Shown here: piece by piece, positions 19,974-26,282 of the stretch
Layout: the number at the start of each line of letters is the position of its first letter
Numbering within the stretch: the stretch's first letter is position 1
Position numbers and translations under genes: made by a program
Source: Tubulanus polymorphus
Taxonomy: Eukaryota > Animalia > Nemertea
Reading direction: 5' to 3'
Length of the DNA: 64,000 nt
Assembly: GCF_964204645.1 (NCBI RefSeq)
Contig: NC_134035.1
Coordinates: 12,556,451-12,620,450 of the forward strand
The notes under the pieces: model-generated
Database searches by the model: none
What the model was told of the DNA's origin: nothing
What the model saw: the letters and a program-made list of their open reading frames with translations, nothing else

Positions 19974-22900
19974 ATGGCATGTTTTAATAATAAATTCGCC
20001 GCTATTGTCATCACTATGATATTCGCCGTATCAACTCTGATACCGTCCTCATTAGCGGAAAAATACGACGACGATGACTTTGACCTTTCAAGGTAGAAAA
20101 CCATTTACATCTTGACTTTCAATTATGCGATGGCTTTGTCAGTGTGAAGTTTTAATGTATCTTTTTCTTTAGTTTATTGAGCAACAAAATCATTACCGTT
20201 ATGATTAGGTCATCTTTTACCGAGGTCATTCATCTTTTTAACGACCGATCAAAATCTTACGATATTTTGACTTTTGAAAGCGATAAAATGTCCCCTTTGA
20301 ATAGATTTCGAGAGTCTTTTTGCCCGCTGAAATCGATTAAACCGAAAATCAAGTAAACAGATACCTGAAGATGATTTTCAAGTACATATAATATATAAAT
20401 AGGTATCGGTTTGTAACAACACAAGATTTTGATTTGATAAATTCGCTACGTTCGTATTCTTATTAAATACCGCCAAATTCAGTGTTGAAAGCAAGGCAAA
20501 CCGTATGTAACGTATGAAGTTTTGAGGGCATTGACACCTCAACTAATGATTAGTGGTTTAGGTGAGCTCAAAACCTTTTGAAAACTATATAAGGGGTATT
20601 TCTCGCTTTTGTACGCGTCAAACATAATTATATTTCTTTCAACGTGACATTTTGTATTTGTTCTTGAATTGTTTTTCATGTGATTGGAGTTTCAATGTTC
20701 TTGGAAAAAAAATCTGAAACCACCACAACCTATATTCAATTTCTCCGTGAAACATTTGATGAGACATGTTACCCAAATCAAATTCACGTATTAAAGACGT
20801 TGCTATGAAACCCATAGAAGTTCGGTAAAAAAATATAAGTGTAGCATGAAACGTAACGAAAAAAATGAAACCGCCAAAGGGCATTTACGACGACTTTTTG
20901 CAGCCTAAAAAAACCTTCGAAATGAAACGAGAGATTTAGATAACACAATAGAACACGGCATCGGGGAAAGTGAAAGTGGAGGGAAGTAAAAAAAACCTGT
21001 TCAGTTCCAATGATTTTCATCTGAAGTCATATCTTTTTCCTAAAAAAATAGGATGATTTTCCCACAATCTATTTCATTGATTGATGTAATTTCTTTTACT
21101 TTGTCTCTTACAAACCCAGCACACTGACCGGGAACGAAACAGGGGGCTTCGGTTCGGTCCGGAATCACTATCAGGCTAAGTGGTTAGTCAAGCCAGTGTA
21201 ATATTCACCATTAATTCGTGACAGATAGTAATATAATAATTAGCAATAATATCCTATATGTGTTGAACGGCGAAAACACCTGCAACTTGAGTTCTTACAC
21301 ATGTTTATAGCTAATCTAGTACCGATCGTAAAATGTGGCTATAATTGATATGATTATATTTTGTCCCGTGTTTGAACCCGGTGGATGTAGCAATGACCAA
21401 CCGGCTTCATCTTGACTCATTGTATCCACACAATGACATACGTCTGTCGGCCGAGTTGCGCAGTCAATATTTAAGTCCGAAAGTTAGTCACAAATCTGTT
21501 AAAGACTGATCATTCACTTAATATAAGGGTTGTCTATAGAACTAAGATGATCTTAGACTGGTCTTAAATCTAAGCGGCGACTGTTTAACTAGCCCGGGAA
21601 TGGCTGCCGTCAGTAATCCATAATGACTTTCCTTTGAAATCGGTTTTCTAGAAACTGACGAAATACATAACAAAGATTTGCAAAGCTGTGAAAGCCTTTT
21701 GAGCTAACATTCCATTTCTGATAAAGCTCTGTGGCACGCTTCTTGCAGCACCGCAAATAAAACAGCTCTTTCTGATAATCAAATTATCACCGGTTAGACA
21801 TCAAGAACACAGCTTTGAAAAAAGAGAGTAATAGCCACGTATAGATACCCCCCGCAGAGTCGGGAGACTTACACCGGTCGTGTCAGTGTCATTAAACAGT
21901 TATCAAATGTCGTTGGTTTCGCTATAAACTCTAATTAAGCGTGAATCAGTAAAGAGACGAGGTAGCAATACGTAACGCGCGAGAATGAGCAGAAATTAAC
22001 CGGCGACGCCACGCGATCTGGTCGTTTACCTGGGAGTGATACCGTCGTGTCACTTTATTACAGGTGACTATTAGTGCCGGTGATCATCACACCCGAAATC
22101 AAGTTGATCATAATGAACACATTCCTCGTGTGTTACGGAGGGTCGAAGTTTTCCCCATCGGCCAATACAGGAAAGCCGTACTGGTAAATACATAGCAATC
22201 GTTTTTAAAAACTATATTAGAGCAAACACGATGACTACAAGTCTCATTCACATTCAATGGTAGCGAAAGCTCTTGTGTCAAATAGAATATTTAACCTATA
22301 TAAAGTACTACTCTTCTGGTTGTATTTATTCTATACCCGGCTAACACGGCCACTCTAATGATGAATGTAAGATAAGATGAAATCCGCAATAGAAAGTTTG
22401 AACCCGAAGATTTTCCTTCAGCTTATGTTTTATTCGACGTTTCGACTTTATCTTATGTCATCTTCAGGAATACTTAAGTTCCAACAGAACAATGAAATAT
22501 AAATACATAAAAACAAAACAAAGATACTAAATTTTGGACGCATTTTTGCTGCATATTTAATTTGATTTACATAAAAGTCTATTACGTGGATTGTAAAGTT
22601 TTTCATTCTAATGTATTTAATCAACACGGACAGAGCCTATCAGCCTTTGTTACGATGACTCACAGGGTCTTTGATATGCGTATAAAATAATATTCAGTTT
22701 TTAGGCTTTTTTCAATTACTTGGAGTACGGATCCGCCTCCCAGAAATCTGCCAAAATTATCAAATTAAAAAGATTTTTCAGCCCTCAATAAGAAAAAAGT
22801 TTTTTTATGGAAAATACTCAAATCTTATTTCGATTTTTCTCCATTCTTTATTCCCGGAAAAATCTTTTCTCCATGTGATTAAAAAGGCCCTATCGTATCG

Positions 22901-25900: not shown

Positions 25901-26282
25901 AATCCCACACAGAAAAACACGACCCAGTAGCGCTGCCGTGGCTTATGTTAAAAAAAGGTTTGGAATCCTGAGATAAGTTTTAAGTTGTAAGATTGGGTGT
26001 AGGACCAAAATATTAGGTTGGAAATTAAGAAGTCTATATAGAACTGAAAAATAGTCTTAAACTGTCCCAAATCGAAAACACACGATTATCTAACTGGCCC
26101 TTATTTGGGTCATGTTGAAATGTCAAGTGTTTCATTGGCTATGAAAGTTAGATGGGCTGAGACTGGCATTAAATCTAGGACTTTACCGTGCAACTAACGC
26201 CACCTGGTGTGACTCATTTTTCCTTTCCATTTCAGGTAAACGGAGCGCATTGAAACGCGCGATCAGAAGTTTGAACAAATAG
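19974..26282 (+). CDS. Calcitonin-like neuropeptide precursor (109 aa); predicted mature 41-aa peptide with four Cys and C-terminal Pro-amide
   Basis: Exons 19974-20092 ([40 protein letters not shown]; signal peptide plus acidic pro-region), 25714-25877 ([54 protein letters not shown]) and 26236-26282 ([15 protein letters not shown]). Junctions are GT-AG with matching phases 2 and 1; total 330 nt. Confidence 0.85.
22431..22472 (-). ncRNA. Minimal type I hammerhead ribozyme motif (Penelope-like element type)
   Basis: The minus strand reads TATTC-CTGAAGA-T-GAC(loop)GTC-GAAAC-GTC-GAATA: stem I TATTC/GAATA, conserved core and GUC cleavage triplet. Confidence 0.7.
24196..24308. mobile_element. 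MITE with ggacccagt(t/a)cc(a/g)cagt...actgtggaactg termini
   Basis: Inverted termini flank a short core. The same terminus appears at ~4400-4550 and ~9880-9963, and as the unit of tandem arrays at ~40 kb, ~49 kb and ~63.9 kb. Confidence 0.6.
24549..24754. repeat. (TA)n microsatellite inside perfect 20-bp inverted flanks, forming a ~206-bp perfect palindrome
   Basis: cttcatcacttacaccctca-(ta)n-tgagggtgtaagtgatgaag. Confidence 0.95.

Follow-up and report, generated by a model that had tools for sequence, protein, structure and literature searches.

Three short exons on the forward strand of a 64,000-nucleotide stretch of the genome of the nemertean Tubulanus polymorphus (contig NC_134035.1, positions 12,556,451 to 12,620,450; this whole stretch is called the window, and positions are given in its numbering) appear to encode a small secreted peptide with four cysteines. 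An initial annotation, made from the sequence alone, described them as a hidden gene for a divergent calcitonin-like peptide with two predicted disulfide loops. Is there a functioning gene at this locus, does its product belong to a family of peptides, and is that family calcitonin? We find that the gene is transcribed and spliced as modelled, and that it belongs to a real and conserved orphan peptide-hormone family, which is unnamed and common to a nemertean, molluscs and an annelid. The calcitonin build describes the form of the peptide only; on the basis of sequence comparison and gene structure, filing the gene as a calcitonin is not supported.

The gene model and its transcription

Inspection of the window placed the coding exons at 19974-20092, 25714-25877 and 26236-26282, separated by two GT..AG introns (GT donors at 20093 and 25878, AG acceptors at 25712-13 and 26234-35). 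Exon 1 runs from MACFNN to DFDLS and supplies the letters 'ag' of Arg40, which is completed by exon 2. Exon 2 in turn ends in 'g', and exon 3 opens with 'gt', completing Gly95, followed by 14 residues and a stop codon. The joined precursor consists, in order, of a signal peptide, an acidic spacer, Lys-Arg (KR), a four-cysteine 41-mer, G-KR and a tail. The signal peptide is predicted and has the features of a generic prohormone, with a short polar start, a hydrophobic core at residues 8-19 and SLA before the acidic spacer; full-length homologues have N-termini comparable to that of the Tubulanus precursor. Coordinates and peptide were exactly as the initial annotation had given them for a three-exon secreted-peptide precursor with KR and G-KR sites. 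A C-X4-C ring and a C-X5-C ring adjoining the C-terminal Pro-Gly were likewise confirmed in the 41-mer (the pairing within the rings is predicted), as was the intron that splits the codon of the amidation glycine into 'g' and 'gt' (25877/26236).

Using the open frame around exon 2 as a query, we retrieved from NCBI/UniRef a protein of 109 amino acids (aa), 'uncharacterized protein LOC141913259 [Tubulanus polymorphus]', that is identical to the joined three-exon model, and this served as the reference wherever a whole precursor was needed. The locus is thus a three-exon coding gene, as proposed, but not strictly a hidden one, since NCBI already carries the identical model. The novelty lies in recognising, across Lophotrochozoa, a conserved and unnamed family of four-cysteine amidated peptides with a shared intron in the split glycine codon.

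Sequencing run X1 showed the flat coverage of genomic DNA (34.5x). In run X3, depth was present over the exons and fell to zero at 24740-25669 and 25949-26227. One X3 contig joins 25877 to 26236, skipping 358 nucleotides (nt) bounded by GT..AG, and a second contig extends 145 nt upstream of the exon 2 acceptor, with its final 30 letters (AAATACGACGACGATGACTTTGACCTTTCA) matching window positions 20061-20090, the end of exon 1. Since X3 contigs span both joins, both of the predicted junctions (20092/25714 and 25877/26236) are supported. No second copy or retrocopy of the gene was present in the Tubulanus genome, where it occupies a single locus, and the spliced contigs are therefore not mimicked by a retrocopy. 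With exon-only coverage and both junctions in X3, the spliced transcript on which the model depends does exist.

A conserved peptide family in Lophotrochozoa

A full HMMER scan with the exon 2 peptide (1.84 billion representatives, E<=0.001, clusters at 50% identity) matched 34 further clusters, at 34-50% identity along the entire mature peptide. Named members were found in bivalves (Saccostrea, Ostrea, Mytilus, Mactra, Dreissena and Ylistrum), gastropods (Lottia, Patella, Haliotis, Gigantopelta and Nucella), the chiton Liolophura and the annelid Owenia, and all are labelled uncharacterized or hypothetical in the databases. The four cysteines are invariant in 35/35 family representatives, which is far beyond chance, and the pattern described in Tubulanus is thus conserved in its homologues. 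Also nearly invariant in the mature peptide alignment are G, F, P, H, A-G and D (the GFP, H, AG and D motifs), and the family consensus is KR-x-CxGFPCMYTHLGxKAGRASLxRxLxxxIxDCxxDPxC-[SND]P-G-[KR]R. Mean column identity is 60% for the mature peptide and 13% for whole precursors, mature peptides of different phyla are 35-48% identical, and KR ahead of the peptide and G-[KR]R behind it are found in nearly all members. Judged from the alignments, this pattern, in which the peptide is kept and the pro-region is not, is that of a prohormone. A feature search of the ESM Atlas returned mostly neuropeptide precursor clusters as neighbours (scores 0.82-0.86), which serve as leads only.

The same conservation bears on the idea that epidermal or gland cells secrete the peptide for defence, or as a toxin or pheromone. 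Nemerteans do produce cysteine-rich secreted peptide toxins, and cysteine-stabilised helical peptides are known among toxins. However, the Tubulanus gene is single-copy with no local expansion, and its structure is kept across phyla. The level of identity between phyla, together with the invariant non-cysteine residues, is typical of receptor-constrained hormones and unlike the pattern of fast-evolving toxins or antimicrobial peptides, and the 41-mer is weakly amphipathic with a small net negative charge (2 K/R vs 3 D/E). We regard a toxin or defence role as quite improbable.

In Tubulanus, Saccostrea, Liolophura and Owenia alike, the proline codon is followed by a G and then by a GT donor, and the next exon supplies bases 2-3 of the glycine codon followed by basic residues. 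Because this phase-1 split-Gly intron is common to a nemertean, molluscs and an annelid, it is older than their divergence. Intron 1 is of phase 2, at an equivalent place, in Tubulanus and Saccostrea. Several automatic open reading frame (ORF) calls in other species continue straight past Pro-Gly, as would be expected with a conserved intron at that point. Such read-throughs could also be cited in favour of a real transcript whose peptide is processed otherwise, with the whole propeptide active, or with intron 2 retained to give a non-amidated end. They are, however, ORF calls on genomic contigs and not transcripts, whereas X3 shows the spliced form; moreover, nearly all members keep the cleavage sites on either side of the peptide but not the flanks. 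It is very improbable indeed that the peptide is processed in this other way. In Owenia fusiformis, the deposited model (L005:10001-10105) has a non-hydrophobic N-terminus (MTASLWIPAEGSARDD...), and five of the model's residues could not be matched to the DNA. Probably the first exon has been called wrongly, leaving the true signal-peptide exon unannotated.

In a tree built from the mature peptides, the family falls into two clades (support 91/89). Type 1 comprises 26/35 representatives, including Tubulanus and all named taxa, with the ending x-Pro-Gly. The remaining 9/35, type 2, are known only from ENA and Logan assemblies and end in C-F-S-I-G-KR or similar, or in C-F-T-A-G-stop (FSI, FSA, FTA or ITQ before Gly), from which a non-proline amide would be predicted. 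The Pro-amide predicted for Tubulanus and type 1 is therefore not universal in the family, as it does not hold for type 2, with its FSI/FSA/FTA-Gly endings. In the type 2 genes whose DNA was inspected, one open frame encodes the protein, uninterrupted by introns. Intronless relatives of this type (C-FSI/ITQ-G-K...) lie on metagenome-style eukaryote contigs at L007:10001-10354, L009:5944-6480 and L010:10001-10360, and the first of these loci adjoins reverse-transcriptase ORFs. Type 2 genes may derive from a retrocopy. A tandem duplicate considered at L009 was rejected, as the two neighbouring 178-aa ORFs turned out to be unrelated.

A motif search of 8.4 million full texts found no name for the family; subscription journals and the truncated parts of some supplementary files lie outside the scope of what was searched, and absence from the literature is therefore unproven. 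The family motif is absent from the supplement of a nemertean, brachiopod and phoronid neuropeptidome (PMC8557429), which includes allatostatin-C, CCHamide and elevenin-type families, and no member occurs in the supplements of a pan-mollusc survey (PMC6425005), an oyster ganglion survey (PMC8398477) or a scallop survey (PMC5996578). As to the suggestion that four-cysteine relatives may already have been reported from molluscs, mollusc homologues are present in databases, but only as 'uncharacterized', and the peptides of Cardoso et al. (PMC7200681) are two-cysteine peptides only.

Relationship to calcitonin and DH31

Tubulanus has a canonical calcitonin precursor and DH31 (PMC8557429 supplement), the former with two peptides that end in SP-amide, one with a nine-residue ring (C-X9-C) and one with a seven-residue ring (C-X7-C). 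Lophotrochozoan calcitonins (Tubulanus NC[RY]VNLGGHC...SP-amide, mussel CALC I/II, oyster Cragi-CT) resemble the four-cysteine family in the order of signal peptide, pro-region, KR, one residue and N-terminal ring, and in a length of 30-41 residues with a helical middle, an S/N/D-Pro-Gly-[KR]n ending that gives a Pro-amide, and a short basic tail. In the four-cysteine family the C-X4-C motif begins 1-2 residues past KR in 35/35 members (the disulfide itself is predicted), in contrast to the C-X6/7-C ring of nemertean, brachiopod and phoronid calcitonins. Instead of a single disulfide there is a further, invariant C-X5-C pair near the C-terminus, and the C-terminal Pro-Gly-basic sequence is confined to the type 1 clade. 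Calcitonin precursors often hold two peptides, whereas each four-cysteine precursor holds one. In the Tubulanus calcitonin gene, peptide, Gly and tail lie in one exon (peptide, G-RKRR and tail together at L008), unlike the four-cysteine arrangement with an intron within the Gly codon, and there is no detectable sequence similarity.

The vertebrate peptides CGRP, amylin and adrenomedullin combine a C-X4-C N-terminal ring with a helix and an amidated C-terminus, as predicted for the four-cysteine family, and in CGRP the ring is followed by Thr-His, as in the family consensus; both likenesses are leads only. Unlike the Tubulanus peptide, they have a single disulfide with no C-terminal ring and end in Phe- or Tyr-amide rather than Pro-amide. 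DH31 is alike in being amidated, with ~31-40 residues and a Pro-amide ending, and in Tubulanus it lies on the same chromosome as the four-cysteine gene, but it contains no cysteines, and the phase-1 intron of its gene (L011) interrupts the mature peptide rather than the Gly codon. The second-ranked neighbour in Atlas features (0.86) was an arthropod diuretic hormone class 2 (DH2-like) cluster; we took it to be DH31-type, and it too is a lead only. Peptides of the allatostatin-C/somatostatin type, CCHamide and elevenin/L11 also carry a short loop between two cysteines close to one terminus of the processed peptide, but are much shorter, with one ring and without the CxGFPC or DCxxDPxC motif.

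The description of a divergent calcitonin-like family is therefore apt for architecture only; for kinship, a Pfam model, hhalign, a profile search of the PDB and the intron positions were all negative. Pfam PF00214 gave no match to the LOC141913259 protein at E<=10, and none of the 35 members reached its 22.3-bit cut-off. The best score (18.4 bits, E 0.0033) came from one member (P0008) and covered residues 4-88, most of which belong to the signal peptide and pro-region. A six-frame PF00214 search of the genome found nothing and missed the worm's own calcitonin too, making this a test of little power for invertebrates. Alignment of the family profile with the Tubulanus calcitonin exon (L008:1450-1653) by hhalign gave a probability of 0.2% over 1 aligned column. 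When the family profile was run by hmmsearch against all PDB chains (E<=10), no calcitonin, CGRP, amylin or adrenomedullin was found, and the only hits were methyltransferases, which are chance matches.

Could the gene nevertheless be a true, very divergent calcitonin/DH31 paralogue, representing a third lophotrochozoan branch and acting on a calcitonin/DH31-type or an orphan PDF-like class B receptor? The working features by which Cardoso et al. (PMC7200681) recognised mollusc calcitonins, namely dibasic sites, two N-terminal cysteines and an amidated C-terminal proline, are all seen or predicted in the Tubulanus precursor, and its S-P-G-[KR]n ending and short basic tail are common to nemertean calcitonins (PMC8557429 supplement). 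Thiel et al. (PMC8557429) left the ligand pairing of two lophotrochozoan calcitonin/DH31 receptor clusters unsettled and a PDF-like cluster uncharacterised. One member does score 18.4 bits on PF00214, but none of the 35 is at the cut-off and that match is mostly to signal peptide and pro-region. Calcitonin (9.17 Mb), DH31 (2.81 Mb) and the four-cysteine gene (12.58 Mb) share contig C11, but this contig makes up 13.98 of 267.8 Mb (~5% of the genome), and the shared chromosome is a one-off coincidence, a single test at about p=0.05. The hhalign and PDB results, intron positions unlike those of calcitonin or DH31, and a type 2 clade without Pro-amide also speak against a paralogue. The calcitonin-like architecture and the shared chromosome leave room for distant kinship, and we consider a paralogue of this kind unlikely, with an appreciable chance of being right all the same.

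Both reference genes in Tubulanus showed differences from published transcripts. The genomic calcitonin exon (C11, ~9.174 Mb) reads NCYVNLGGHCQAETAYAMANQIRYLNSADSP-GRKRR with the tail SLSAFIAKRL..., unlike the published transcript (NCRVNLGGHC...AKQIRYLNSPDSP-GRKRR-SLANLV...). This mismatch could mean that the gene has a second or an alternative exon, that a paralogue exists, or that strains differ. Genomic DH31 (L011:1456-1674 and downstream, C11 ~2.810 Mb) is interrupted by its phase-1 intron after ...NYGNKLM, and the next exon reads ALQAATDWQGP-GRKRR, compared with ALQAANSYDSP-GRKRR in the published transcript, which could be due to an alternative 3' exon or a variant.

Predicted structure of the peptide

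AlphaFold2, run with the family alignment, modelled the mature peptide as a single long helix, spanning residues 6-35 in Tubulanus and 7-33 in Patella (pLDDT ~76, pTM 0.36-0.39). In these models the first cysteine pair precedes the helix or lies at its start, the second pair lies at its end or follows it, and the helix holds the two pairs ~35-45 Å apart. At this distance the models fit only local pairing, C1-C2 and C3-C4. A Foldseek search of the peptide model against the PDB gave no match, which is unsurprising for a helix of 41 residues.

Features of the locus

The features of the gene are collected in Table 1. Intron 1 contains a perfect (AT)84 microsatellite at 24568-24735.

Table 1. Positions of the features of the four-cysteine peptide gene in the window.
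Feature	Position	Strand	Basis or remark
5' UTR (untranslated region), minimum extent	19948..19973	+	~26 nt of X3 contig beyond the 119-nt coding part of exon 1; start presumed
Signal peptide, ~28 aa	19974..20057	+	Top hydrophobic 12-mer at residues 8-19; cleavage predicted after SLA
Acidic spacer, first part (11 residues and 'ag' of Arg40), end of exon 1	20058..20092	+	GT donor 20093-94; junction in X3 contig
Intron 1, 5621 nt, phase 2	20093..25713	+	No X3 depth at 24740-25669; oyster orthologue with phase-2 intron at the same place
Start of exon 2, remainder of propeptide, (R) and 11 residues	25714..25747	+	
Lys52-Arg53 dibasic cleavage site	25748..25753	+	KR or RR here in nearly all 35 family members
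Predicted mature 41-mer GNCAGFPC...DPICSP	25754..25876	+	Four Cys invariant in the family
Cys codons of the 41-mer	25760-62, 25775-77, 25850-52, 25868-70	+	
Gly95 codon, base 1 (final base of exon 2)	25877..25877	+	Junction in X3 contig 17
Intron 2, 358 nt, phase 1, within Gly codon	25878..26235	+	X3 contig skips 358, GT..AG; same position and phase in oyster, chiton and Owenia
Gly95 bases 2-3 and Lys96-Arg97	26236..26243	+	Gly95 codon split into g and gt
Short basic C-terminal tail (12 residues) and stop	26244..26282	+	Similar short basic tails in homologues
3' UTR, minimum extent	26283..26385	+	X3 contig 17 extends to 26385

Contigs of all runs break at ~26429/26430, just past the 3' UTR of the gene. 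Beyond this point (26430-27500), X1 depth rises from 34.5x to 185-577x and X3 depth is 44-269. This stretch, which holds tandem units of 57 bp (26509-26647) and 202 bp (26744-27121), looks like a multi-copy, transcribed repeat. Within it, position 26629 is A in all four runs and G in the window, and position 26568 is C in run X2 alone and G in the window; either the reads differ from the assembly at these positions, or the copies of the repeat vary.

Discussion

We consider it probable that the single-copy, transcribed gene described here gives rise to a secreted signalling peptide, a neuropeptide or hormone of an unnamed lophotrochozoan family, in the form of a processed and amidated 41-mer. 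The signal peptide would be removed from the 109-aa prepropeptide, a prohormone convertase would cut after Lys52-Arg53 and after Lys96-Arg97, a carboxypeptidase would remove the basic residues, and Gly95, the residue with the split codon, would be used to amidate Pro94. The 41-mer would then fold with the C-X4-C loop at the N-terminal and the C-X5-C loop at the C-terminal end, capping one long central helix, and may act as a neuropeptide or hormone on a class B G protein-coupled receptor. By analogy, such a receptor is the leading candidate, since the build of the peptide is of the calcitonin/CGRP type, with an N-terminal ring, a helix, a C-terminal amide and ~40 residues.

Several points weigh against this interpretation. 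The gene, its splicing and transcription, the family and its pattern of conservation are shown here; how the precursor is processed and amidated, how its cysteines pair, where it is expressed and which receptor the peptide acts on are what we infer, and run X3, whose run type is not on record, is taken to be RNA from its exon-only, spliced contigs. The C1-C2/C3-C4 pairing is suggested by models of moderate confidence, and the peptide may instead be hinged in the middle of the helix, at its nearly invariant Ala-Gly, with crossed disulfides. The Tubulanus helix is not notably amphipathic, that of the oyster peptide more clearly so, and in the family tree the Tubulanus sequence has a long branch.

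A broader proposal would make the family a pan-lophotrochozoan 'double-ring' hormone, either the missing class B ligand of the calcitonin/DH31-related or PDF-like receptor clusters or an ancient third branch of calcitonin/DH31, with type 2 as a retro-copied offshoot. We offer this as a speculation that probably goes too far.

Lophotrochozoan neuropeptide catalogues have been thought nearly complete, yet this family is missing from the nemertean, brachiopod and phoronid collection and from the mollusc surveys that we searched, and its gene structure has been retained since before nemerteans, molluscs and annelids diverged. The predicted double-ring design, with a small disulfide loop at either end of a helix, would be an unusual build for a peptide hormone. 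Several lophotrochozoan class B receptors are without a settled ligand (PMC8557429), and a defined candidate that can be synthesised makes their pairing directly testable.

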